In this document: one piece after another, positions 4 to 48,294 of the stretch
Layout: the number at the start of each line of letters is the position of its first letter
How positions within the stretch are numbered: position 1 is the stretch's first letter
Origin: Chlorokybus atmophyticus
Lineage: Eukaryota > Plantae > Mesostigma and Chlorokybus algae
Reading direction: 5' to 3'
DNA: 64,000 nt
NCBI GenBank assembly: GCA_009103225.1
Contig: RHPI01002955.1
Location: 30,486 to 94,485 of the forward strand
The notes under the pieces: generated by a model
The model's database searches: none
What the model was told of the DNA's origin: nothing
The model's input: only the letters and a program-made list of their open reading frames with translations
Position numbers and translations under genes: made by a program

Positions 4-1397
4 ATGAGTGGTGCGGAGCTGAATTACCCCGTGCACGAGAAGGAACTTTTAGCGCAAGTCATGGCGCTACGACAATGGCGTTGTTTTTTGGAAGGCAAAA
101 AGTTCGTGCTTGAGACGGATCACTCTCCATTGAGGTACTCGCTCAAGTGCAGCCCGAGTGGACCGACCAGATTCGGCAAGTGCTTCGTGAAGACACGGAG
201 GGTATGAAAGTGTTGCAAGAGCTGAAAAATACAGCTACGGACACAAGTGGGCACTGGTCAATGCGCGACGGGCTGCTGTGGCACCATGGGCGCTTGTACA
301 TCCCCAACGTCGCGCATATCCGTGTGAAGTTGCTGAAGGAAGCTCATGATGTGCCCATTGCTGGTCACCAAGGGTTGGAAAGGACTTTGGCAAGCTTAAA
401 ACAGCGTTTTTACTGGCGAGAGATGCATCGCGATGTGCGCGACTACGTGGCGTTGTGCGACGCATGCCAAAGGGTGAAGGCAAGCAACCAAAAGCCAGGT
501 GGGTTGCTGCAACCTCTCCCTGTGCCATTGTCCAAGTGGGAGCAAGTTACCATGGACTTTATCACGGGGCTACCAAAGACAAAAGAAGGGTACGACGCTA
601 TACTTGTGTTCGTCGATAAAACCAGCAAAATGTAAGTTTTGGGAGGCGCTGCATAGTGCACTGGGTACCACACTGAAGTTTAGCACGGCATTCCACCCGC
701 AAACTGATGGGCAAACGGAGCGGGCCAACCGTGTGATCGAGGACATGCTGCGTTGCTACGTTAACGCGCGACAAGACAATTGGGAGGAGCTGCTTGAGTT
801 GGTTGAGTTTGCGATCAACAACCACCACAATGCAAGCACAGGTGTCACTCCCTTCCTTATGAACTACGGGCAACATCCNGGGGCAACATCCATTGACACC
901 GTTGACGGCATGGACACCGCGACGACATGACGTGCGTGTGGAGGCAGGAAGGCGACATTGTGTTACTCTCCGCGAAGCACGTCCAGGTGCGTACGGGAGT
1001 TCGCAAGCTGAATGAACGCTGGTTGGGACCATTTAAGGTCAGCAAAGTTATCTCGGACGTGGCGTACAAGTTGGAGCTACCCGACACCATGCGTGTGCAC
1101 CCCGTTTTTCACGTCTCCCTTCTGAAAGCATATCGAGGACAACCGCCAGAAAGGCCACCCCCCGAAGTTGGCACAGACGGTGAACCCGAGTGGGAGGTAG
1201 AAGACATCCTTGGTGAGAAGTTTGTGCATGGCGTACGCAAGTTCTTAGTGAAATGGAAGGGCTATCCGTTGCATGAAGCATCCTGGGAGCCAGAGGCACA
1301 CTTGACTAATGCTCAAGACGTTGTGCGTGCCTATCTTGCTCGACGACACCCTCGCGAGCTTCGAGGACGAAGCTCACCTGGGGGGGGAGGAGTGTAA
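4..1397 (+). pseudogene. pol: Gypsy pol remnant with frameshifts and internal deletions
   Basis: Split over ORFs 4-207, 147-635, 499-930 and 927-1397; part of the integrase core is missing after KTSKM. Confidence 0.9.
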
Positions 1398-2064
1398 CAG
1401 TCAAGGCCAAATTCTGTGATTTTCATGGCCGTTTTAGGCCTTATTTGTAAGGTACATGTTTTTAATGACTTGTGGCGGATATCGGCGAGTTATGAGTCTG
1501 CCGCGGATATCGACCGGGGCCCCAAGACCAGTCCGGAAGGTGCCAGAAAACGGAGGGCCAGTCGAGAAGGGCTCGACCAGATTTCTGGAAGGGCCTGGCG
1601 CCAAGTAGTATAACTTGACCATATGAGCAGCAAATTAGGAGATCTTTGGTGCGTTGGAAAGGTCTAGAAGTGTACTACAAGATTCTGCAATAATATCTTA
1701 GCTTCTAGTTCCGTCTAGCGCTAGAATCGTCTAGACAGTAGCATGTGCAGACTGGTAGGTATAAAAGTGACATTCTACAATTTGCAATACAACCTTTAGC
1801 TCCCTAGTTTCTGGTGTGCAAGCTTGGTGGTGGTTAGCATAGGTTGCTAGCGTGTGTCCACTGGTGTGTGCTTGCTTGTGTGACGATCCAAGGCGCTACA
1901 CGAGTCGGTGTGTAGCTTCGAGCGCATGTGCGTGCGTACGCGAATGGCGGGGCGCGCGTGTGTGCTTGGCAGAGGGGGCAAGGTTCCGGTGTGAATACCG
2001 TGTCTTGGTGAGAGGGTTGTTGATTGGACCAACTCATAGGTGACAAGGCACGAGCACCGTCACA
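1393..2064 (+). repeat. LTR family A (672 bp)
   Basis: TG..CA termini directly after the PPT; homologous to 18291-18955 and 45265-45973. Confidence 0.95.
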
Positions 2065-3400
2065 CCCTTCCTGCCGCGGATACTCACTTGCCACCGCACT
2101 CTGACCATTTGGAGGCATCTCCATCAAGAAACGGCTGTGGCTCGCCCTCTCCCTCTAAGCTTGCCACATTGATCCCAGCCTGTTTTGTTGGTAAAGAGAT
2201 TGATCGAGGTGTCCTGAAAGCTGCGCTGAAAGACAAAGGCTTCATGCTCGACCTTATGAAGCAACATGAGGTCGTGGAGGAACGGGCGGCAACCAACAAG
2301 CGCAAGGCTGTGGAGCAAGAAGATAACGCCTTACCTCTTATGAGTGACAGTGCCACGGAGAGCGCCTGCCAGGATGTGCAGGGTGACAAAAAAAAAAAGA
2401 AGAAGGTTGTTGGAACAAAGGACGCTGACATGACCACAAAGGGAAAGGTGAGGCATCGTTACAACATTAGAAGAAGCACAGCGCCTTGAAGCCTTACTGG
2501 GGCTGACTGTGTGTCCTGAGTAGGCACAGGCGGGTTTACAGCGTCAAGTGGCTGCTCAGCATCGTCTAGAGAGACATTCGGTGCGGCACGAGCTGTCTAA
2601 GCTAAAAACACCGACGCGCAAATGCTTCGAGGGGCTGACTCGTAGTGCAAAGGAGTTGATCACCCTACAGTACGCCCAAGACGCGCTGCATCACCGCATG
2701 CGGCATGCCTCGAGGTGGGTGACGAAAGTATGCAATAAGTGGGAGCAAACGCGGAGAGTGCGGTCTAAACAGACCTCTGGGGATTGGCCGTGGTTGGAAC
2801 CCATATACGATATGGCCATCTGTAGTACGTTGTTGCCCCTCGCCGTCCTCGATATGATGGTGTTGTTGCTGCCGCAGCAACCCGGCAATGTGCAAGAGCT
2901 ATCTGCGGAGCAAAACTTCGACCTGCTGCAGCAGATGTTCCTGTCGATGTCGACTGTTGTGGGTTGAGATGTGTGCCACTACCTGAGCAAACATACTGGA
3001 TGGCAAGTAAAACCATTCGAGCTGTACATGGCATGCTTTGGCTGGCAGTGGCTGTATGTCATACGGCACGTCGAGCTGATTCTGTGAAAGCTTGAAGAAA
3101 ACGACGATGCGGGGGAGTACAAGAGTGACGACAGCCATGTCGAGGGTCTGGATGAACGCATGCTGAACGAGACCACCAAGACCAGCAGGTGGTGTATGGC
3201 GGCAGATGGGCAACAAGTGATCAAGCAGGCAGTAAAGCGTTATGCTGCGCCATTTAGATGGGAGTCGCTACGCCTGCAACGCGATAATAGAGTTTGGTGG
3301 CAGAGGCAGCTTGCACACCCGCGTGCACCATGTGTGCTGATTTGTCGCATTGAAAAGCCACCCCAGCGAATGGGGAGACGCCCTGTTGCAAGAAAGTGAT
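2065..3400 (+). pseudogene. Unidentified protein-coding remnant, 5' end cut by the Gypsy LTR
   Basis: Consecutive protein-like plus-strand ORFs (2040-2489 Lys/Glu-rich with a KKKKKK tract, 2548-2967, 3160-3399) separated by stops; no motif recognised. Confidence 0.35.
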
Positions 3401-4036
3401 ATGCCATGTCTGCATCATAGCACATCAAAAGAATGTGGCAAATAAATCAAAGAATCTACAAGCGTGTCTCTTCTGCAAGCAACCTCACCCGTTTTGGTCG
3501 CCACGCCTGATGCAAGTCGCCAACGTGTCGGCGGTGATTTGGCCCCCGCCTTGATGCCAATTGTGCATGTATTGTAGTTTTGTGTTGGCTTCCTGTAAAA
3601 CCATATAGGTACATGTATAGTTGCAGCATGGTGCATGGTGCACAAGAGATCTGCTGTTGTCAGAAGCATTGGCTGTACATGTGTATGATGACTGCCCGGT
3701 GCATGAGTCAGTGCATGGCTTGCATACCTCGCTGGTTTAGAGCGTGGTTGACAGCAACAAACTCGGACATCGCTCTGGGTTCCATGGCATGACAGCACAG
3801 TATTACTCTATGATCGTGGTAGTATGCGAGTATCCTTGTACTGTAGTACCATTAACAGAAGAGTACTATTCATGTTGATGTAGTACCATGCATGGGTTTG
3901 CAATAGCGTCCTGGTACAATCGTGCTTCACTTGAAGTTTGACCCATTTAGGGTTCGTAAGCTGGCAACCCTAAATTGATGCTCATACCCTAAAGTCTCGC
4001 TCAGTTTGTGGGCAGCCGTGCCAATTCCTATTTTGC

Positions 4037-5805
4037 ATGATGTCGGCGGCAGCGTTTAAATCCTCACCTAGGAGACCATGCTTGACGTGCCCACAATGCA
4101 ATGCGTACGTATGTGCCAATGGCCGTAGGCAGCAAATGCGAGCACACTTGACCGAATGCCAGCGAGCGCAGACAGTGTGCCACGGTTTTAATGCTGCTTG
4201 CTGGCATCACACCACACACAATGTTGAAGTGTTTGGCTGCCGCCTCGGCCAAGTGCTGTGCAAGGAACCCGAGTTTCTCCATTGCGTGCAGTGCGTGTGC
4301 GAATCGTGCTCGCGCTCATGCTTCGAGTGGCGAGGGGAACCCATGCGCTTTCTCACATAGACAACACCGGGACATGTGGTTAGTGGACAGGTGGTGGATG
4401 CTGTGGAGATAATTCGGCAGAGTGGATCACGACGTATCACTGCATGTTATGTTGGGCGTATGCTTATTTCATGCATGTTGAAGATGTTGTCGCATTCAGA
4501 GCAGTCTTCCACGGTGTGGGCGTGGGCAGTTCCATCCCCTGGCCGCTGTAGAGGAGGCAAACCATCGATCGTTGAACAGCGCACTGCATCGGCTGCGGAA
4601 CACAGTTAAGTTGGGATGCGAGCAGCTGAACGGTGTGAGTGTCATGGTGCATTGGCCGCTGGATGGGGAATGGTACGCGGGCGTTGTGGAATCATTCAAG
4701 CAAGCGTCAGGTCAGCATCGCTTCGTGGCGTGCGAGATTGAGGACGCATCATATATGCATGGTGCAATGAACAATGTCTTTGCAGGGCAGCACCGTATAG
4801 TATTCGATAACGGTGATCGACCACAAATCATTAACTTCAAAGGGCACAACGTATTCGCGTACACATCAGTTGACGGGGCACGCCATGCTCTGCGCGCCGG
4901 AGGGGAGAACGTCAGTCGCAAAGTAAGCCCGGACGCCATCATTATTGATCCCTGGCCAGCACCACGGCCAGCCTTGACCACATACACGCCATTTGACAAC
5001 AAGCTTGGACGCACACGCAGACCAAAGGCACTCGACCTATTCTGCGGCGGTGGCGCTGCCAGTCGGTGTATACCATGCAGGCTTTGACGTGACCGGGATG
5101 GACATAAGTCTCTCCTCTGAGTACCCGCTGCCCTTCATACATTGCGATGTATGCACCCTGAGTGCAGGAGAGCTAAGCGAGTACGAGCTCATCTGGGCTA
5201 GTCCACCATGCCAGGCCTATTCAGGTGCTATCCCGGCACCTCAACGGGCGGCACATGGCACATCCTACAGACACCAGGATATGATACCGCTCGTCCGACG
5301 TCTGCTGCTTGCAAGTCAGGTCAAGTTTGTAATTGAGAATGTGCCAGGAGCAGCTTCCTCATTCAGACCCAATCTGTCCCTTTGTGGCACGATGTTTGCC
5401 AATCAACTTTCCGACACCGTCCTTTTGAGACACAGCCAGTGGTAGCTACCCCACCAGCACGCTGCTCGCACGCGGGCAAGGCAGTTGGACTGCTATCGCC
5501 GCACCTGTCCGCTAGCGCGAAGAAGACAATCGTGACATCAAATGCACAGCAGATGTACCCGGTCTATGGCCTTCTAAGCACCAGGGGCGGCATTGCTGCG
5601 TGGCAAACAGCGCTGAGAATGCTGGATGACCTCGTCCGTTTCCATAGCGAATGCAGTTCCTCCCGCAATGGCGGAGTGCATAGGGCGTCTCATGCTTGAA
5701 ACATTGGATATGCGCTGTGACTACCCTCCTGTGTCATGGAACTATGAGGCTTGGATGTGGTGCACTGTATTGTTGCTTAATGCCACACGGCGGACTGATT
5801 GTTGA
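4037..5805 (+). pseudogene. Cys/His-finger + Tudor + C5 cytosine DNA methyltransferase (short phage/bacterial type), disrupted
   Basis: Motif I LDLFCGGG (5031-5054), II GMDI, IV ASPPCQAYS (5200), VI IENVPG (5335), VIII LCGTMF..RHR.FET (5412), X WMT..IANAVPP..ECIGRL (5623-5690). Tudor VMVHWPLDGEWYAGVVESF..GQHRIVFDNGD is interrupted by a 75-nt GT-AG intron (4711-4785). Three frameshifts and a TAG at 4358. Confidence 0.88.
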
Positions 5806-5957
5806 ATGTCGCATGGCACATTCGATTGTGGTGACAGTTGTGCAGTGACAGCTTCCCGGTATTGTACACATCCACATGCAAAAGTCTTAGCATACGATTA
5901 GCAATGCCTAAGTGACTGATATGCTCCAAACTCAGAGTAGTGAGACAAGTACGTGTG

Positions 5958-8900
5958 TCACGTGGAAGTGTAGTGAACGTTCACCCAATACTTGCCCTCT
6001 TGTACACGGGCGCTGTCCTGATTAAACATGGGGAGCAGCTGGACAATGCCTTTGACTTGCTCTAGAGTCACGACATCGAGATGTGGACCGCCTCGACGCT
6101 TTTCCCATTCCAGAGCGATGCGCTTTGTGTCGCTCGTCACATCCAGCTTCGTGTACCAGCGGACAAACACGACCCCCTTCCACACGCGCTCGCCGCTACC
6201 ACCCCACACCACCACGCGCAGAAAAAAGAGTGCCTGAGCCCACCACGTCACGTTCACACCGTCCTCATCACCTTCCAACTCAAGTGTAGAGAACCAAGGC
6301 CGCCCATGGAACATCCCAGTTGCGCGCGCCATGCTGACTCTTTATGTTATGTACACCGCTGCGCCTCCGCTCACCACGCAAACAGCACGCCACCCGTCGG
6401 CCAACTCCAGTTGTTCCCTCCTCAACCAGCTGTCCAGGGTGGCAGGCAGCTTGTCGGCGAATTGAGTCTTCAAGGGGACTTGGCGGCTACGCGCAGATCC
6501 GCAGTACGGGATGGACTCCCTCCTTGTCAGCACATCCATCCGTAGCAACTTGTCCGTCTTCTCCATGACATTACAGCACTGCTGCCGCACCTGCGCCATG
6601 ACCGAGCGCATCTCGGGATCCACGACCATGCCATCCTCTCTCACATATTCCGCACAGCTCCATGCCTTTAGGATACGTGCCTGGTAGTCCCGGTTATTGC
6701 CACCACGCGCCCAGCGTTTGATATTTTGGGCGTGCGTCTGCTCCATGCGGTTGGCGCTGAACCAATCTGGGTGTCCACTGCTGACAATTGCCGGCCCAAA
6801 ATGAGTGAGCTGATGCATCTTCTCGATCTTCCAACCTGACTTCTGTGCAGAATATGACGACAGTAGCGGATGCAACACTGCAGCTTTGAAGGCAGCCAGC
6901 TCGTTGTCGGCTGTGGTCAGGGTCTCTCTTGTGTGTTCATGCGCCTTCAGCAACTTCTTGTTCCACTGGGCAAGCGATGCGGCAGCAATGGTGAAGATAT
7001 CGTTGCCCTCACTGTCGAGCAGCAAACCGTCTGCGAGGACCGGCAGCAGCTGCAGCACCGCCACTTTCTCCACCACTTGAAAGGAGTGGTCGGACAGGAA
7101 GAAATCTACTGTGCTTGTGGGTGCCTTGAAGTGCAAAACCCGCAGAGTCGCCTTGCATGCATTCAGCCTGTGCACATCTGCTTGTGAGCACGTGTCGTTG
7201 GCTTTCGTGTTCAACACAAAAGCAACACCAAAGACGTGCCTGGCCTGCAGAATGTGTCTCGTGGATGGACGCATTCGTTCCTTCGCGGCGTCGTACACAG
7301 CAGCAAGCAGGTGGTCAATGATGCCTCCCAGCACATACATTGCGTCAGGGGCAAGACGAGAGTAGCAGTCAGCTCCCGGCACCCGCAACTATCGCCAACC
7401 CCACAGTGCATTCTATTGCCAAACCACATTGCCTGGTTTCACGGAAAGCCATTCATCCTCACGATTGCCGATAATTTGACCGTTACCTCCTCGACATGCA
7501 TGGAGTGCTGCTCTTTGAAAGCCTTGGCTGTCTGGCGTGCATTCCTAACACCGCTATGCAGGTCCGCCCGCAGCTGACGTATTGCTGGTGTGTAGAAGGC
7601 CTCGGTTCTCAATTCCCGGTCCTCATCCATCTTCAACAGATCTGATTTGGTGACGAGACGAATATCGCAAGGATGTCGTGTTTGGTTGCCCGACACAGTG
7701 CGTGCGAGTGTGGCAGTCTCCTACAACACGACAAACTCAGATGTTCTACTGACAACATCCTCCATGCACTGTTTGCTGGCGGGCTGCATCCGGTTACAAC
7801 CATTCATGCCCACTACCTGCAAATCGCTGATGTAGTTGGCAAGCGCGGGAAACACACGACGCTCGATGCCATTCGGGTCGATGAGCTGCAGACCTTCCCA
7901 ACTCGCCCGCTTCACATCCCCTAACACTACATTCAAAGCGTCATGAAAAATCTCACATTTTCGAATGGAGAACGATTCCTTGCCCTGAAGCGCTATCATA
8001 ACAACCCCCATGTTGCTAGCATACATGTCCCAACTGTAGTTGGCAAGCGATGCCATCAGAGGGTAGCCAGAGCGCTTGCCCGCGCTGTCCAGCGTGGTCT
8101 TGTCACTGTACAGAATGGCAGGCGCCAAGTAGGACGCTTCCCCCACCTCTCTCCTCAAATCCACCTCCACATCCTTCCACCAATCGCCCGTGGAAGGATG
8201 GCCAAAGCTGTGCTCGTCACCAGTGTACTGGAGATTGAAGCCATTGGCGGCATGTGGATTGCCATACAACCGCGCGAGCCATACCTGCTCCGACCAAGAG
8301 CATTACTTACTATGCTGGCCTCAGAATAGATACTGCATCGATACTGCATTAGGTACTGCATTTCACAGACCTTGGCCGGCATATATGTGACGCAGATGTC
8401 CTGATCCTCAGGGTCTCCAGGCTTGCGCAGGTCAGCCGTCACGTAGTTTTGATACGGCAGCACACTCGCATGTGCATATGTGACATGGCTCTGATGGTTG
8501 AAGCACATGCACATCGGTCTCCCACTGGAGCTCTTCCGTCAGGAAGTGTGCATTTCGGAAACACTTGATGATCCGCCCCATGTCGGAGGCCGACAGGCCT
8601 TGGCCGTTGTTGCACTGCACGAATGCCACTGCAAGAGCATGCTCCGAGCCATACCACCTGGATTCCGACGCGTGCGAAGGGACGCCTCCACTTCCATGTT
8701 GGCGTGCCACAGGTTTCTCAGGCACACGCACACATCGAAAGCCCTCGTTCACTTCCTCCTCCTCCTGTTGCTGCTGTGCGTGTGTCTCCTGGAGGAATCC
8801 TTCAGCATCAAGCATGTGAGCATCCTGGATCGAACTCCCCAGTTCAACATGACCCGCATCGTACTGTAATGGACGCTGGCCGACATACAGCTTGATCTGC

Positions 8901-8986
8901 TTGCACACCCTGCTGTTAATAATGTGCATGTAGACCGAGCTGCGTGTGGCGAAGCGCATGTGGCAATACGGACAAAGGACTCCCAT
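5958..8986 (-). pseudogene. Plavaka-family (CMC/EnSpm-related) transposase, multi-exon, decayed
   Basis: N-terminal C2H2 finger (CPYCHMRF..MHIINS), TGDWW, PAILYSDKTTLDSAG..YPLMASLAN, FHDAL..EGLQLIDPNGIERRVFPALANYISD, KMHQLTHFG..GHPDWFSANRMEQTH, and C-terminal FVRWY..IVQLLP..YWVN. Confidence 0.88.
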
Positions 8987-9475
8987 ATCTCACTACTAAC
9001 GTCGACACAGGTGTCGCCAATGTAATCTGCATCATGTCCAGCAACACGCACAGCCGCCGCCGCCGCCGCCACCGCCACCGCCACCGCTACCCTTGCATGC
9101 CAGAGGCGGGAAACTTGGCCGCCATTCACTGGCTCTGTCGTACCATTATAATGGTACGATCGAGCCATTGCACGTCCAGGGTGAGTCTCTGTATATATAT
9201 ATATATATGTATGTATATCCTGATTGAACCGTTTCAATGATACGAAGATGCCTTTGCCAAAAGGTATAGGCATTGTACAAAGGTATCATTGAAATGGTAC
9301 CTTTGTATAATGGCAATGGGAGTTCGTACCATTGACAACTCTGGCAATGTCAATCCCCCTGCGCATGAAAACACCATTAATAGCTCCGCCAAGCTATGCC
9401 CTTACAGGGGCGTCATGCCGAGGGTATGTGGCGTTTGGAGGATCGTTGGCGGCGCTGCCAGGGGCGTAATGGGCA

Positions 9476-10334
9476 TTGTGGTCGAGGTCCGGGATGAATT
9501 CCATGTTCGCACAGGGCGGGCAATGTGCCGGAGGGGTGTCCTCGGTGTCAAACCCTACCAAGACTACCAAGGGCACATCCAATCACAACAGTGACTCGGG
9601 CGATATCTTACAGGGCTCCCCCTCCGAGTGGGCAAAGGCACACCACAATACTGCCTCTAAGAAAATCCGACCCACCAGCAGCTGCGACCACGGCGACATG
9701 ATTGAAGGGACCAAACAAGACTGGCATAACCAAGGTGGGTTACGATGCACTGTCAATGCCACGTGCTAGGGTTCTTTTATCTTGCACATGCACAGCCTCA
9801 AGTATCTTGCACTTGACATACACTATCAATACCACATGCACACCCTCATGCACAACCTCCAGTGTCATGCACATGAACAGCATGACCAATCTCGCAAATG
9901 CACAGCCTATTTCTACTTGCGGGAGCTCACAAGTGGCAAAAGAGAAGCTGCGGAGTACCACGAACGTGTAATCCATGACCTAGTTTAATGTTTCTAGCGG
10001 TAATTAAGCAGTATGCTTGCAGATTGCCATGTTGGTCAGAGTGAACCGAGAGCAGCGCGGTAGGCTGACTGTCTGCCTGGCGGAGTGCAACAAAGCGGAA
10101 GACGAGGTAAGCGTGTGTATGCTGATGGGCTAGTCCTCTGGCAGCACGCCACTCTTACAGCATTACCAAATGCAGGTGGTCACTCTCAAAGCGACCATCA
10201 AGCGCATGCGCGTGCACGGCGAGGCGCTGACATTTAAGCTGAAGGACGAAGTAGCCGCTGTACTGTTAGCGAGCGAGGCAGCGGATGAAGATGACTCCGG
10301 CGCTGAAGCAGAAGACTCGTCGGAGGAGGAATAG
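9476..10334 (+). CDS. Putative small multi-exon gene divergent from the Plavaka transposase, acidic C-terminus
   Basis: GT-AG-bounded segments; last exon VVTLKATIKRMRVHGEALTFKLKDEVAAVLLASEAADEDDSGAEAEDSSEEE*. No family recognised. Confidence 0.3.
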
Positions 10335-11883
10335 GAGGAGGGGGTTTGAGGAGGAGTTCTGCGGTAGGCACCACGGGTTGACAAGCTGCGCATGAGTCCG
10401 ACAGCTAGACTCAATGTTATAGGGTACTTTCATGCGCAAGTCGGCTGCTCAGTTGCAAGTGGACATACTCTCACCACTGCCGGTACATTGTATATATTGT
10501 GGGCTTATAGGTGCAAGACCAAACAATCAGTCCAAGGTTTGTACAAGCTGCATGGCATGTTAGTGTTGGCTTACAGCAAGAATTGCCAACTTTTGTCAAA
10601 TGGCAAGGGTCACATATTAACAGCAGTGTAGCGGCAAAGAAACTGCCGGCTATTGCTGTCAGCTGTCCGTAACTACCGGCTAACGGCCGTCTGTGCACAT
10701 CGACCAAAGGGTAACTGGTTGACAACTCTCGGCCGGTTAGTGCCACTGACAACCACTTTCAGCCCGCGGCCGTCTGCGTCAGTCCACTTAAGCCAACGGC
10801 AAACCACACAGTCCAAAAGTAATATTTCAGGCAGCGACAGGCAGGCTCAGGCAGGCTCAGGCACCAGTCACTCCCTTAATCCTTAGCCAGTCACCGTGTA
10901 AAATTTGCGACGAATTATCAGACCTAAGTATGCTATGTTCAGTGCCGCAGTGCAGCTGGTCGGCGGCGGTGGCAGTGGTGTAGTTGCTGTTGGCGGCGGC
11001 GGTTGTATTTTAGCTGACCGCTAGTGCATTTTAACAGATGGCATTGTTTAGAGTGTAGCCGAAGCTTGTAATTGATAAGTTGCAATTCAAAAAGCATGGT
11101 GCGGTAGGTAAGTGAGTGCTGGCTTTGGGCGGTGGTATGGGCGGCGATGTGAGGGGCGTAGCTGGTGGTGTGAGCGAGCCATGTCTATTGAAGCTTGATG
11201 CTTTTGTTGACTGCTAAGACGTATTTGTAGGTTAATCTCGGCCACAGGGTTTCACTGCTGAGGACATGAAGTCATGCGGTGAGGGTAGGGATGTCCCGGC
11301 GCTCCTGCAGGAGGTTTCAAGGAGCACACATGGCGCCACTTGACAGGTTATTGTGCGAACATGTAACCAGTCTTGTATGCATTGTTTGACACTTGGAATT
11401 TGATATCGCTGTAATGCTTAACACGCGCTAGTTGATTCAGCAGTACGATTCCGTGCTGGCAATCATAAAAACTAAAAGGCGCAACACACACAACTGCATG
11501 CACACAGCAATTTGCAGCAACTATAGACACTTGCACACACACCCATGTTGCTAACAAGCGGCTTGTGTGTTTACACGTGTGATTTTTCTGCATAATAAGC
11601 ACAGTGTACTGCAGCAGGGGAGCTGCCTCTTGGTAAATAAACAGTTGGCATGTACTGGCACACACCTATCATCATGCAAAATCCGCATATAATAGCACAT
11701 GCATAAATGCATACACATATACACAATGTCGCCTCATTACTCTATAATTCTTGCAGTTGCTTTAGATTTCAGACGATGTTGTCACAACCGCACACAAAGC
11801 CCTACACCCTGAGGTGTTGAAGTTCCTAGTCTGCAAGACTGCGTTACTAGTAGTTCAGGTTCATTGCATGCCAATCCGCATGC

Positions 11884-12350
11884 TTGAGATCTTGGAGGTC
11901 CAGGAACCTCACTCACTGTGCGTTACTGGACCTCAAAAATCTCAGGTTGGCGATATCCTTCGTTCTTTAATGGCTGAGATCTTGGAGGTCCAGCAACCTC
12001 ACTCACTGTGCGGTGCTGGACCTCCAAGATCTCAGGCGGCGATATCTTTCGTTCATAGGTGCCTGAGACCTTGAAGGTCCAGTAACCTCACTTACTGTGC
12101 ATTACTGGACCTCCAAGATCTCAGGTCAGCAATATCCTTCGTTCTTAGGTGCCTGAGATCTGGGAGGTCTAGTAACCTCACTCATTGTGCGGTGCTGGAC
12201 CTCCAAGATCTCAGGTTGGCGATATCCTTCGTTCCTTGATGATGAAATCTTGGAGGACCAGTAACCTCACTCACTGTGCGTTACTGGACCTCAAAGATCT
12301 CAGGTCGGCGATATCTTTCGTTCTTAATGCCTGAGATCTTGGAGGTCCGG
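11884..12350. repeat. Tandem array of ~89-90 bp units, each an inverted-repeat hairpin (5 full + 1 partial)
   Basis: Units start at ~11884, 11974, 12063, 12153, 12242 and 12331; consensus CTGAGATCTTGGAGGTCCAGTAAC-ctcactcactgtgc-GTTACTGGACCTCCAAGATCTCAG plus a conserved linker. Confidence 0.93.
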
Positions 12351-12373
12351 ACCTCATACTGTACTAAGCGGGT

Positions 12374-17468: not shown

Positions 17469-18955
17469 ATGAAGTTTAGCACGTCATGCCGTCCGCAAAC
17501 AGCTGGCCAAACGGAGCGCGCAAATCACGTAATTGAAGACATGCTGCGATGCTACGTGAACGCACGACAAAATAACTGGGCGGAGCAACTGGAAGTGGCG
17601 GAATTCGCAATGAACAATCACAAGAATGCAAGCACCGGCGTAACCCCCTTTCTGATGAATTACGGTCAGCATCCATTGACGCCGTTAACACATGGGTACC
17701 ACACGGAGATGTGCATGTGAGGCGGCGGGTGACTTCTTGAAGACATGTGTTAACATCACCAAAGCGGCCAAACAAGCTTTTTTAGTGGCGCAAAACAGGC
17801 AGAAGCAGCACGTAGACGCACATTGCCGGCATGTTACATTGAATGAAGATGACATGGTATTGCTTTCTGCGAACTTGCTGGTACGTGCTGCAGTTTGCAA
17901 GTGAAGTAAACGCTGGCTTGGACCATTTAAAGTCATTACGGTGATCTCGGACGTCGCGTACAAGTTGCAACTACCTGAGACTATGCACATCCACCCTGTC
18001 TTTCATATATTCCTGCTAAAACCATATCGAGGAGAACCACCATTGCGTCCACCGCCTGAATTGGCTACAGACCATCATGTGGAACATGAAGTGGAGGACA
18101 TTGTTGGGGAGAAAATGGTGCGCAACATGCGCAAATGCTTAGTGAAGTGGAAGGGCTACCCTATGCATGAGGCCACTTGGGAAGCGGAGGAGCACCTAGC
18201 GAATGCACAACAAGTTGCAAGCGTATTTGCAACGACGTTCAGTACAACCTTGCGAGCTTGGAGGACGAAGCTCACCTAGGGGGGGAGGAGTGTAACAGTC
18301 GCCGTCAATGTCATGATTTCATGACCTTTTAGGCCTTATTTATCAAGTATCATGTTTTCATGACTTGTGGCGGATAACGGTGAGTTGTGAGTCTGCCGCA
18401 GATATTGACCGGCCCCAGGACCGGTCTAGAACACGCCAGAAAACGGAGGGCCAGTCGAGAAGGACTCGACCAGATTTCTGGAAGGGTCTGGCGCCAAATA
18501 GTATAACTTTGCCATCTGGGCATCTTTTGAGGAGTTCCTTGGTGCGTAGGAAAGGTCTATGAGTGTAATACAAGGTTCTACAAGAATATTTTAGCTTCTT
18601 ATTCCGTCTAGCTCGAGAAACGTCTGGACAGTAGCATGTGCAGACAGGTAGGTATGAAAAGGACATTTCACTTTGCAATACAACCTTTAGCTCCCTAGTT
18701 TCTTGTGTGCAAGCTTGGTGGTGGTTAGCAGGGGTTGCTAGCGTGTGTCCACTGGTGTGTGCTTGCTTGTGTGACGATTCAAGGCGCTACACAAGTCGGT
18801 GTGTAGTTTCGAGCGCATGCGTGTGCGTGCGCGAGTGGCGGGGCGCGCGTATGTGCTTGGCAGAGGGGGCAAGGTTCCGGGGTGAATACCGTGTCTTCGT
18901 GAGAGGTTAGTTGATTGGACCAACTCATAGGTGACAAGGCACGAGCACCGTCACA
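17469..18955 (+). mobile_element. Gypsy chromovirus family A, 5'-truncated copy (integrase C-terminus, chromodomain, LTR 18291-18955)
   Basis: QTAGQTERANHVIEDMLR, GPF, chromodomain LVKWKGYPMHEATWE, same PPT and LTR as 1393-2064. Confidence 0.93.
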
Positions 18956-19016
18956 CTTATCATGAAAGTAAAGTAAGTGACAGAGAGGGACTTAAGCCAG
19001 CCTTATAGGCGTAACA
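18956..19016 (-). repeat. 61-bp 5' fragment of LTR family C
   Basis: Reverse complement starts TGTTACGCCTATAAGGCT and aligns with the start of 12374-13526. Confidence 0.65.
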
Positions 19017-20264: not shown

Positions 20265-21726
20265 ATGGACGCGCAGCAGTGCGAGGTGGCCGCGTCGTCT
20301 GTGGCGCTGGCCAGGGCGCAGGTGGCGCTCATTGCGGCGTTTTTAGGCAAGACGGAGGCGCGCGACAAGATTGTCAGGACAATACAGTGAGCTCTTTGTG
20401 TTCAACGTCAACATCGTCGTGTCTGCATAGAGCCCAGATTTGGTGTGCTGCTGCCTTCATCGTGCTTCTTCCCGTGAGTCTGGTTAGCAGCAACAGTTTG
20501 TGCTTGTGTGTACACTCATGTACGTGACCAGTTACCGTTTATTGTTGCAATTGGAGCCACAGCATGCCATGGCAATAAAAGCACAGCACAGCATACTTGA
20601 GCGCACCGCCGCTGCAACTGCTACTAGTGCGGCTGCTGCGTTTGCTGCTAGCATGGCCGTGCACAATTGAGTCAGACTTAACGTGTATGTGTGTCTGCGC
20701 GCCCGCATCCGCACATTTGCGAATGCATGCAGGCGCACATACACACGCAGTCTGATCTGACCCGAACGAGCATGGAAGTGTGGGCAAACATGCGAATGAC
20801 AACTTGGTGGCATTGGGGTTTCACAGAATGCCAAGGGGTCAGTGTGAACTGCGTGCGTGCGTGTGCGTGCGCATTTGCATTGCTTCAGCATGTGTTTGCC
20901 TTCGAAGATACGAGCAAGCACTTGGCACTGGGTCTGACAGGTTCCCAGTGAATCAATTTGTGCATTTCCACAGGTATGGGTCGAAGGCGATCTCGGCTGG
21001 GGAGAAGGGGCCGCTGCTGGATTTGGAGAAGCATGCGTCGATGGCGCGCAAGCTGTTCCGTCTGGCGAAGTCGGTGAACGACCTGCAGCAGCTGCTTGCG
21101 CCCGCACCCAGGGACCAGCCTGCTCCCATTGTGCTGCTCACGCGCGCCAAGCACGGCCTCCTCGGCACCTACTTTGCGCTCGACGCCGTGCTCTGGGCCG
21201 GCCGTGTCGGCGTGTACAAGAACAAGGACCGCGCCGAGCTGCTCGGCCGCATCTCCGTCTGGTGCTGGATGGGCGCCAATTACTGCACCATCGTCACGGA
21301 GGTAAGCGCGGGGGGGTTCAAGTGCGATGACGGTGTGTTAAGCTGTCGCTCTCTCCCTGGACGCTGTGTTGCGTGCAGCTGTCGCAGCTGGCGGCCAAGC
21401 GGCGAGGCGATCGGGCGCGCTACCTCGCACTGCTGAAAGCCTGCCTCGACGTCGTAACAGCGTTTGGGATCCTGCAGCTGGGCCAGAGCGTGCTCAAACC
21501 GCGGCTACAGGGCGTTATCGGGCTGATCTCCTCTCTCATCTCGTGCTACCAGGTATCGTCCGTAGCTCTTTCGTCGCATGGCATACAAGCGCAGCGCTGC
21601 ATGTCCATTCCCGGAATTGTGCACACCGTGCACTTTGTGTCTTGCACTTGCTGCGATGACAACCTGAGTGTCTTGCAGGTTTACCCAGCACAGCCCGCTC
21701 CAGCCCTTAAAGCAAAGGCTGCGTAG
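20265..21726 (+). CDS. PEX11: Peroxisomal membrane protein PEX11 (plant PEX11c/d/e type), 223 aa; exons 20265-20386, 20974-21301, 21379-21552, 21679-21726
   Basis: Spliced product has FLGKTEARDKIVRTIQYGSK, ARKLFRL.K.VNDL, LGRISVWCWMG and SSLISCYQ; GT-AG introns with consistent phases; C-terminal KAKAA. Confidence 0.95.
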
Positions 21727-45264: not shown

Positions 45265-45973
45265 TGTAGCAGTCGAGGTCAAATTTCATGATCTTAGGAC
45301 TTTTTGCCCATTTATCGAGCACCACGTTTTTATGACTTGTGGCGGATATCGGCGAGTTGTGAGTCTGCAGCAGATATCGACCGGGGGCCCAAGACCAGAA
45401 CGGAAGGTGCTAGAAAACGGAGGGCTAGTCGAGAAGGGCTCGCCACCACATTTCTTGAAGGGCCTGGCGCCAAATAGTACAACTTGATGATTCTTGCAGC
45501 AAATGAGGAGATTTTCCTCATTTGCTACAAGAATCATCAAGTTGTACTATTGGCATCTTTGGTGCGCAGGAAAGGTGTAAAAGTGTACTACACGGTTCTA
45601 CAAGAATATCTTAGCTTCAAATTCCGTCTAGCTCGAGAAACGTCTGGACAGTAGCATGTGCAGACTGGTAGGTGTAAAAGGGACATTTCACTATGTGCAA
45701 TACAACCTTTAGCTCCCTAGTTTCTTGTGTGCAAGCTTGGTGGTGGTTAGCAAGGGTGGCTAGCGTGCGTCCACTGGTGTGTGCTTGCTTGTGTGACGAT
45801 CCAAGGCGCTACACGAGTCGGTGTAGCTTCAAGCGCATGCGCGTGCGTACGCGAGTGGCGGGGCGCGCGTGTGTGCTTGGAAGAGGGCAAGGTTTCGATA
45901 TGAATACCGTGTCTTGATGAGAGGATTGTTGATTGGACCAACTCACAGGTGACAAGGCACGAGCACCGCCGCA
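45265..45973 (+). mobile_element. Solo LTR of Gypsy family A with TSD CCTCT
   Basis: TGTAGCAG..CCGCA, CCTCT on both sides (45260-64, 45974-78); aligns with 1393-2064. Confidence 0.93.
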
Positions 45974-48294
45974 CCTCTTGTGCGTCCGCTGGCGAGATCG
46001 TGCTGATCGTGTTGAGATAAGCTGTCGCGCACCTTTGCCCAAATCATCAACATCTCATGGGAAGTCACATAAAGAAGCTGCACCTCGTTCCTGTCATTAC
46101 CCAAGGCATGTATTATGGCGCACGAGTCGCTCGTATCCTCCTTACAAACATTACTCAAGCAACGGGCATGCACGTAGGGTCTTATGACACCTCTCTTCTT
46201 CTATACGGCTCCCCAAAATCATTCATTCGTGCAAGCTTGCGCCGCTCTCTTGACAAGCTGCATTATCACATGCACTTGAAGACGGATTATGCTATCTGCA
46301 ATGTAGTAGCGGTGAGCAGGCGAATCATTTCTCTACTCTGGCCGGTGCTTCCTGCTAGCGGGCCCTATGCACCAACTAAGCCCACACAGCAATGGAGCAC
46401 CTTGGGGTGCTCACGTCTCAGCGCAGCGCAATGCTATTATCTCTCTTGCCCCAGCTGCACACCGCGCTCTTGTCGCGTGGCGATATGAGATGCGCGCTTT
46501 TTATTTTCCCCCTCCCTCCACTCCTACCTCTTGTCGTGTCTCTTCACCCCGGATGAACTCCCCCAAAGTCAGGACGGTGGTGAAATGCCTCTGCGAATCC
46601 GTCCTAGAGCACATGGACATGACCCCGCAGCCTTCGCGCGCTGCTGATGCTCGAGCACGCGCTCTCCCCCCCATTGAGCTAGATGCTGTCTGGCCCTGTT
46701 CATGGTCCTACACTCTGCGGCAGGTAGGTAGTGGATGGGAGATTGCATACGCCGTCCTCCCGGCGCCGCTCCCTTCTCAAAATAGGCAACCTTTGAGAGC
46801 AAAGATCGCTTCCCTCTAAAGGAGCACTTACACACAGCAGTTGTGTCGGCGCTTGGCATTCCTTTGATGACCAGCTAGCTCACGTGAGAGGCAGCCTTGA
46901 GCGTGGTGACTATGTTAATGGCGCTCATCTATCGCATCTGGGTCTGGTCAACGCATCTGTCAAGCGACCCCGATGCCGTCTGTATCTATTCCGATGCTGG
47001 CTCGCACAGCGTCCGAATCGACATTTCGCTCATATGCCGTGTTGAATCCAGCAAGGTGTTTGTCTTGAACCCTCTCTCCCAAGTGCGGCGTACCGAGCAG
47101 CAGCAGCTGCATCATCTCGGCAATCTGCAGGTTGAGGTGGATGCTTAGCTTCTACACTCTCTTAAGCGGGACGTGGAAGAGGTAGTTGTTGCCCCCCTCC
47201 CCGCGCTGTTTCCCTAACTTCCTCTAAAATGCACCCCATGCAAAATTTATCATGGGATTCGGGGGCAGCGCATGTCTTTTCACACGAGCCAATAGAGCCT
47301 TCCAATGTCACGCGTGCGTCCTTGAGGACCCAACTCCAAGCAAGTCATTTTCTTGCAAGAAAGCTGAAGCTTAAAAATTTTTGCATGGATTTGTGGCTGC
47401 ACAAGTTCTGGTGCGCGGGGGGGTGTCGCCCGCATTTGAGTGTTGCGGTAGAGTTGCCCAACTGTTCCATTCAATGTGGCATCCTCAGGCCTTTTTTATT
47501 CAATTTTGCAGCAACAGTGAGATGGTGCTGCCCTAGGCTATGGTGGGAGGGTGGCATCCTCCTTCTCGTAAATGTTCGTGCCCACAATTCCTTCTGAGCA
47601 CGGGAGGCTTTTTTTACAATTGAAAGCGCACTTGTTTAGACCGGTGAATTATGTTCGAAGAGAAGAATGAGACAATGGGCGCACACCTTGATTATTCACA
47701 TCTCTCCTCCTACTATGGCGCAGCTCACGGCCTCCCAGCGTCTTGCTTGCTGGGCAATTTGACTTGAGGTACTTACCGGGTCTGTCACCCTGAGCTGCGG
47801 AAGTACACGTGGGCGAAGAAGCAAGCCCTTAAAGACATATAGGCGGCGCGCATTGACCGCTTCTACGGCTCCCGCATTTTGTGCACCTTTTTATATGATG
47901 TGACCATGCGTATTAGGGAGATTCAATTTGCCCACAAGCCCATCGTTGCCACTTATTGTGTTGCATCCGCAGTGCTTAATGGACTGAGCTTGTGCAAGCT
48001 GGACCCTGCCCTGCTCGAAGACGTGCAATTTTGCAACAATGTTGAGGAGGTGTGTCACACTATGAAACGTCAGCAGGGGGCTGCACTTGTCTGATATTTT
48101 AAGAATGGGCTGGCGGACACGGAGTGCCCGGGGCGAGAGCATGCCTAGCGTCATGAAGATGACAATGAGCGGGAGAATTGCACCATTTGCACCCTGCGGG
48201 TTGTCATGCCAGTGAAGAACTTAAGCTACGTTGTCTCGGGATATGACTACATGCAGGGGAATAACAGACTTTGGGCTGGTTGTAGGCATGAGGT

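Follow-up and report, generated by a model that had tools for sequence, protein, structure and literature searches.

With respect to cytosine methylation, transposons usually act as targets. Elements equipped with a methylation writer of their own are, to our knowledge, rare, the known cases being retrotransposons with a DNMT3 gene and one virus-borne mariner. In fungi, Plavaka and KDZ transposons carry TET/JBP dioxygenases (Iyer et al. 2014; PMC12730594), and the target duplications of Plavaka have been reported as 2-3 bp. Giant Plavaka elements of red algae harbor accessory genes (PAG1-3), including one for an N6-adenine methyltransferase (PF01555) combined with a SET domain and one combining ParB with a 2-oxoglutarate (2OG) oxygenase (bioRxiv 10.1101/2025.02.11.637652). 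Plavaka elements have also been reported in streptophyte algae, in an account that does not mention cargo (PMC13519894). In dinoflagellates and Klebsormidium, DNMT3 is encoded by retrotransposons, and self-methylation has been proposed for these elements (PMC5890265). Mariner-1_OLpv, located in a phycodnavirus, encodes a C5 cytosine methyltransferase (C5-MTase) together with an endonuclease (Bao & Jurka 2013, PMC3627910). Here we describe a stretch of 64,000 nucleotides from Chlorokybus atmophyticus (referred to as the window), in which a gene for a predicted C5-MTase and a Plavaka transposase gene are arranged tail to tail. The locus very probably belongs to a single decayed copy of a cut-and-paste transposon of the Plavaka type, which is related to EnSpm/CACTA and present in multiple copies in a Chlorokybus-like streptophyte alga. 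A Ty3/gypsy long terminal repeat (LTR) adjoins this copy on the left. The accessory gene that this family would carry beside its transposase gene consists of a Cys/His-rich N-terminus, a Tudor domain of the PDS5C/MSH6 type and a small C5-MTase, the nearest relatives of which are encoded on giant-virus-like contigs.

With the fungal Plavaka and KDZ transposons the element has the transposase family (PF18759), the cut-and-paste mode and an accessory gene for DNA modification in common. In contrast, the fungal cargo oxidizes 5-methylcytosine (5mC), whereas the predicted C5-MTase described here would write it, is fused to a Tudor domain and resides in a streptophyte alga. Moreover, the candidate termini (CGTCGCAA) are unlike the TGT..ACA and CATCA..TGATG ends of fungal Plavaka elements. 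The red-algal elements resemble the present one in being large algal elements with chromatin- or DNA-modifying accessory genes and mostly degenerate copies. Their cargo is of the N6-methyltransferase/SET and ParB/2OG kinds and not a Tudor-C5-MTase, and Pfam found the domains of PAG2 (PF01555 plus SET) and PAG3 (ParB plus 2OG oxygenase) neither in the open reading frames (ORFs) of 2040-3800 and 9289-10752 nor in the two genes. The DNMT3-bearing retrotransposons of dinoflagellates and Klebsormidium likewise are mobile elements with a cytosine methyltransferase; they are Copia, DIRS or LINE elements with a host-derived enzyme inside the polyprotein, whereas here a DNA transposon has a separate, intron-bearing gene of phage/giant-virus type. 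Mariner-1_OLpv is a cut-and-paste DNA transposon encoding a C5 DNA methylase and has a link to giant viruses, but it is a Tc/mariner element found in the genome of a virus, and it combines its methylase with a restriction-type endonuclease, without a histone reader. A literature search retrieved no paper in which Plavaka is paired with a C5-MTase or a Tudor-methyltransferase. An earlier note on this DNA had supposed the pairing to be undescribed. For the exact combination the search agrees with this, but the supposition is tempered by two precedents, namely the mariner C5-MTase (PMC3627910) and the N6-methyltransferase plus SET gene of red-algal Plavaka. Transposons with accessory genes that modify DNA are already known, and a Plavaka element with a Tudor-C5-MTase cargo would join them.

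The methylase gene on the plus strand terminates with a TGA codon at 5803-5805 and the transposase gene on the minus strand with a TGA codon at 5958-5960. The two genes thus converge with 152 bp between their stops, close to the 150 bp estimated before. Parts of the stretch were present in four public sequencing runs. Contigs of such runs were aligned to window positions 3500-9499 at an identity of at least 80% (X1 and X2, organism A; X3, organism B). In X1 129 contigs and in X3 388 contigs were aligned, distributed over identity classes of at least 99%, 95-99%, 90-95% and below 90%. The repeated, dispersed copies expected of a Plavaka element are thus represented by X1 and X3 contigs of graded identity. 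The main contigs had a word depth, which is not equivalent to copy number, of about 90-200 in X1 and about 130-430 in X3, compared to 3-6 for variant contigs, a 20- to 40-fold difference. Depth at this level spans all 6 kb, including 3500-4036 and 9300-9499. Self-comparison of the window displayed no second copy of the unit.

The junction between the two genes is contained in single contigs. Record 12 of X2 (2521 nt, about 97% identical) bridges positions 4419-6914 and thereby connects the methylase, the spacer and the tail of the transposase gene, and records 17 and 18 of X3 cross the spacer at 5629-5853. An element boundary within 5805-5958, which the earlier note had named as evidence against its proposal, was looked for in these contigs. 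Since record 12 of X2 runs from the methylase across the spacer into the end of the transposase gene, there is no such boundary. The family is multi-copy and the junction is common to its copies. The proposal that both genes were inherited as one unit is borne out by the bridging contig, the flat depth over 6 kb and the contigs of graded identity. Two independently decayed insertions that became neighbors by chance are the least probable of all explanations considered; only the lack of mapped ends speaks for them, and they are contradicted by the bridging contig and by the flat, repeat-level depth over the junction. Alternatively, the Tudor-methylase could be part of a host multigene family or a segmental duplication, with a Plavaka element lying beside it by chance and being repeated jointly without mobilizing it. 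The fact that the element ends were not mapped in the window would suit this explanation. It is nevertheless unlikely, as the same junction occurs in high-depth contigs of two organism labels, as hundreds of contigs of graded divergence are typical of a transposon family, and as the methylase is of the phage/giant-virus type and not of the DNMT1/3/CMT type.

A transposon family with a methylase as accessory gene is further supported by the anatomy of the two genes. The methylase reading frame of the window copy is interrupted by frameshifts at 5061, 5397 and 5622. An X was placed at each of the three frame breaks, and the resulting read-through was aligned with relatives from the protein libraries. 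The alignment with P0003, P0004 and P0007 is end to end, beginning at motif I and reaching the C-terminus; P0016 was also aligned. The read-through displays the methylase motifs in the order I (FxGxG; DLFCGGGAA), IV (PCQ; ASPPCQ), VI (ENV) and VIII (FRHRPFE), and the C-terminal (A)VPP motif is kept (AVPPAMAECIG...DYPP). Three relatives, P0001, P0002 and P0016, score above the gathering threshold of PF00145. At the three frame breaks the high-depth contigs read +GT, +G and +CA, respectively. These insertions restore a single frame, indicating that the family consensus is open at these sites and that the window copy is dead. In the putative first exon, which is Cys/His-rich and had no match in Pfam or PDB, the contigs read +A at 4053 and +TC at 4059, which together leave the frame unchanged.

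A predicted in-frame 75-nt GT-AG intron at 4711-4785 lies within the N-terminal domain of the methylase. With the intron left in, the N-terminal piece had no Pfam match. In contrast, the spliced peptide matched PDB 7DE9 chain A with an E-value of 1.5e-7 (34 bits, 42 residues, gap-free). This entry is the Tudor domain of Arabidopsis PDS5C in complex with histone H3 monomethylated at lysine 4 (H3K4me1; bioRxiv 10.1101/2022.05.28.493846). In the sequence alignment, W, WY and F of the peptide correspond to W, YY and Y of 7DE9 at the aromatic positions, and the Atlas features score for this piece was 0.86. As judged from sequence, the methylase thus carries an N-terminal domain of the chromatin-reader type, a PDS5C-type Tudor, in accordance with the reader fusion postulated earlier. 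The Tudor domains of Arabidopsis PDS5C/RDM15 and MSH6 resemble it not only in this match without gaps but also in being tethered to a DNA-acting protein. Their partners are a cohesin regulator and a mismatch-repair protein, respectively, whereas the partner here is a methyltransferase, and binding to H3K4me1 is only predicted.

The transposase gene was identified by a match of PF18759 (Plavaka) to the piece at 7721-8269 with an E-value of 3.7e-18 (66.3 bits against a cut-off of 26.3 bits, residues 18-152). A predicted 98-nt GT-AG intron at 7389-7486 connects two transposase frames in phase, and a family contig has no indel there. A second intron is probably present near 8288-8369. Premature stops are formed by TAG at 7721-7723 and TAA at 6342-6344. 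Furthermore, about 62 nt are deleted at 8512, and 3 nt are missing at 6501, where the contigs read +CTC. With two stops and the loss of about 62 nt the transposase frame of the window copy is not open. Both genes are therefore dead in this copy, the methylase by three frameshifts and the transposase by two stops and two deletions, and both have introns, as the earlier reading of the sequence had described. A word-index search with the Plavaka core retrieved a single 134-aa fragment on a 552-nt contig; a 348-aa piece of the transposase matched nothing in the word-index search or in a metagenome scan.

Comparison of the window copy with the contigs over 3500-9499 revealed an excess of C-to-T and G-to-A differences. 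In X1, 80 positions that are G or C in the contigs are A or T in the window, versus 25 in the reverse direction. This excess fits a deamination-type decay of a silenced copy. By sequence context, the C-to-T differences listed are not specific to CpG (4 CG, 5 CHG and 9 CHH; n=18). Divergence from the high-depth contigs is unevenly distributed over 3500-9041, with about 3% and many indels on the methylase side and 0.3-1.3% toward the 5′ side of the transposase gene. This gradient may stem from gene conversion, from a mosaic structure or from the mixing of subfamilies.

A full-library HMMER search with the methylase yielded 2083 relatives. For 472 the E-value was at most 1e-10, and the closest ones are only 42-51% identical. 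The contigs encoding P0003 and P0006 also encode topoisomerase II, ribonucleotide reductase, mRNA triphosphatase and TBP and are, by this gene content, giant-virus-like. From 80 metagenomic and 80 viral loci fetched by alignment, all methylases of this type were at most 46% identical, and more distant members were found on hundreds of phage-sized viral contigs. By its relatives the methylase is assigned to the phage/giant-virus type and not to the host DNMT1/3/CMT type. In P0004 and P0007 a methyl-CpG-binding domain (MBD; PF01429) is inserted within the same enzyme. Among the nearest relatives, MBDs occur at L164:9239-10534, L001:2028-3050 and L163:447-1616, either inserted in the enzyme or encoded by the next ORF; L164 is giant-virus-like, while L001 and L163 are short contigs. 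By themselves, these MBD-bearing relatives resemble methylases that unite a reader with a writer.

An element of the same structure could use the enzyme as an anti-restriction or immunity device acquired from giant viruses, protecting element or host DNA against virus-encoded restriction nucleases or marking incoming DNA. The location of the nearest relatives on giant-virus-like contigs and the combination of a C5-MTase with a restriction-type endonuclease in the virus-borne mariner (PMC3627910) point in this direction. In contrast, no nuclease gene was seen adjoining the methylase in the window, and the fusion to a histone reader fits chromatin targeting better than sequence-wide protection. 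We consider such a device improbable, if the least improbable of the alternatives. A piece of an endogenized giant virus, or a virus-like giant repeat instead of a cellular transposon, would also agree with the giant-virus relatives of the methylase and has a parallel in Amoebidium, where Plavaka-flanked giant repeats accompany viral insertions (PMC11244446). Short GT-AG spliceosomal introns in both genes contradict this origin, as do the flanks, which contain no viral hallmark genes and in which LTR retrotransposons and the host PEX11 gene are the neighbors. A viral fragment is thus very improbable.

The Plavaka-type transposon exceeds the span of 4037-8986 assigned to it in the earlier note, which proved too narrow. 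The repeated unit extends past both limits and is unbroken from before 3500 to beyond 9499. Record 1 of X1 (depth 87), for instance, covers 3500-4385 at about 96% identity and continues for 429 nt beyond 3500. On the left, the end of the gypsy LTR at 2066 is the limit of the Plavaka remnant in the window. The left end of the Plavaka element is either absent from the window or located beyond the gypsy element whose LTR ends there. Together with the candidate right end, this confines the remnant to at most approximately 2067-10912. Two ORFs on the plus strand lie between the LTR and the methylase gene, 2040-2489 (149 aa) and 2548-2967 (139 aa). No Pfam domain was matched in the region upstream of the methylase gene, and the two ORFs may represent orphan cargo. 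Coordinates of the features are compiled in Table 1.

Table 1. Features of the Plavaka-type element and its surroundings (positions in the window)
Feature	Position	Strand	Remarks
3′ LTR of Ty3/gypsy chromovirus	1393-2066	+	integrase and chromodomain at 147-1397 (Pfam); LTR self-matches
Region upstream of methylase gene	2067-4036	+	at least 3500-4036 within repeated unit
Putative first methylase exon, Cys/His-rich	4037-4360	+	ORF; join to next exon putative
Predicted Tudor domain, PDS5C/MSH6 type	4626-4870	+	split by 75-nt GT-AG intron 4711-4785; PDB and Pfam matches of spliced peptide
Predicted small C5-MTase domain, phage/giant-virus type	5020-5805	+	profile and alignment; broken at 5061, 5397, 5622
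Spacer between converging stop codons	5806-5957		152 bp; spanned by contigs
Plavaka transposase pseudogene	5958-8986	-	N-terminal C2H2-like finger; Plavaka core 7721-8269
Palindromes built on GTACCATT/AATGGTAC	9127-9333 (9127-9170, 9266-9333)		inverted repeats upstream of transposase start
Candidate right terminus	10905-10912	-	TTGCGACG on + strand; weak

The 8-mer GTACCATT/AATGGTAC, on which the palindromes upstream of the transposase start are built, occurs seven times in the window compared to 1.96 expected occurrences, and none of 100 shuffled sequences reached seven. It is also present once upstream of the methylase start (3846-3853). Its occurrence in both upstream regions may hint at co-regulation of the two genes or a common binding site. 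Just inside the candidate right end, the 10-mer CGGCCGTCTG is found twice, at 10684 and 10767, which is near chance level.

The surroundings of the element are repeat-rich and contain Ty3/gypsy and copia fragments. The LTR at 1393-2066 is about 82% similar to 18291-18956 and 45265-45975. Three copies of one Ty3/gypsy chromovirus LTR, about 82% alike, are located at 1393-2066, 17845-18956 and 45265-45975, two of them with the integrase/chromodomain end attached. A tandem array of partly self-complementary units of about 90 bp occupies 11881-12362, just past the candidate right end. A host PEX11 exon is located at 20780-21436 on the plus strand and is 77% identical to the Chlorokybus atmophyticus protein; the assignment of the host to a Chlorokybus-like streptophyte alga was based on this exon.

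Several results weigh against the interpretation as a transposon family with a chromatin-directed methylase. Within 2000-12000 the unit is not enclosed by any inverted repeat, and neither a terminus nor a target-site duplication was identified in the window. The TTGCGACG sequence at 10905-10912 is the sole exact match in the window to the candidate end motif CGTCGCAA, of which about two per window are expected by chance. Contig depth does not give copy number, and the case for both genes being present in most copies is therefore weak. The match of PF00145 to the methylase piece 4993-5445 (150 aa) had an E-value of 0.003 and, with 17.5 bits, remained under the 22-bit cut-off. Similarly, the match of the spliced Tudor peptide to PF21743 (PTM/DIR17 Tudor) was under the gathering score (E=6e-4), and an AlphaFold single-sequence model of the Tudor piece including the intron translation was too poor for a structure search (predicted local distance difference test, 42.8). 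Inspection by tblastn of the first 80 loci with methylase relatives and of two relative-encoding contigs revealed no Plavaka or Tudor neighbor. The Tudor fusion and the link to the transposon appear specific to this lineage. The stretch was not found in any RNA run searched. Finally, the observed/expected ratio of CpG is about 0.8 in the element and 0.75 on average in the window; the element equals the window mean and thus gives no sign of special CG self-methylation.

Considered as a whole, with the structure of the element, the state of the window copy and the mechanism taken together, the explanation as a Plavaka family carrying a Tudor-guided methylase is the best one, and we regard it as likely. 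For the mechanism itself, by which a Tudor-tethered methylase enables the element to set its own epigenetic state, we offer a tentative model. In intact copies, the Tudor domain would bring the methylase to transcribed chromatin that is marked by H3K4me1. The transcribed body of the element itself would be the simplest target, and the transposon might thereby write 5mC on itself or on its neighborhood. Such self-written 5mC would set the epigenetic state of the element, in parallel to the TET/JBP, N6-methyltransferase/SET and VANDAL-type accessory genes of other transposons. More doubtful than this model is its extension to an active DNA-transposon family in an early-branching streptophyte alga, in which a virus-derived cytosine methylase is steered by an H3K4me1-reading Tudor domain. 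In that case, 5mC on transcribed chromatin would be written by a selfish element instead of the host. The element would thereby influence how it is itself silenced, and perhaps also a gene-body-like methylation of the host genome.

The value of the dead window copy lies in the evidence it provides for the family and for the junction. If the interpretation is correct, a multi-copy cut-and-paste family in which a C5-MTase of giant-virus type is joined to an H3K4me1 reader of plant type would represent a natural experiment on DNA methylation directed by a reader. It would also point to a path along which methylases of viruses might reach the genomes of eukaryotes. Moreover, it would provide a testable case of a transposon that sets its own epigenetic state, in the lineage sister to all other streptophytes.

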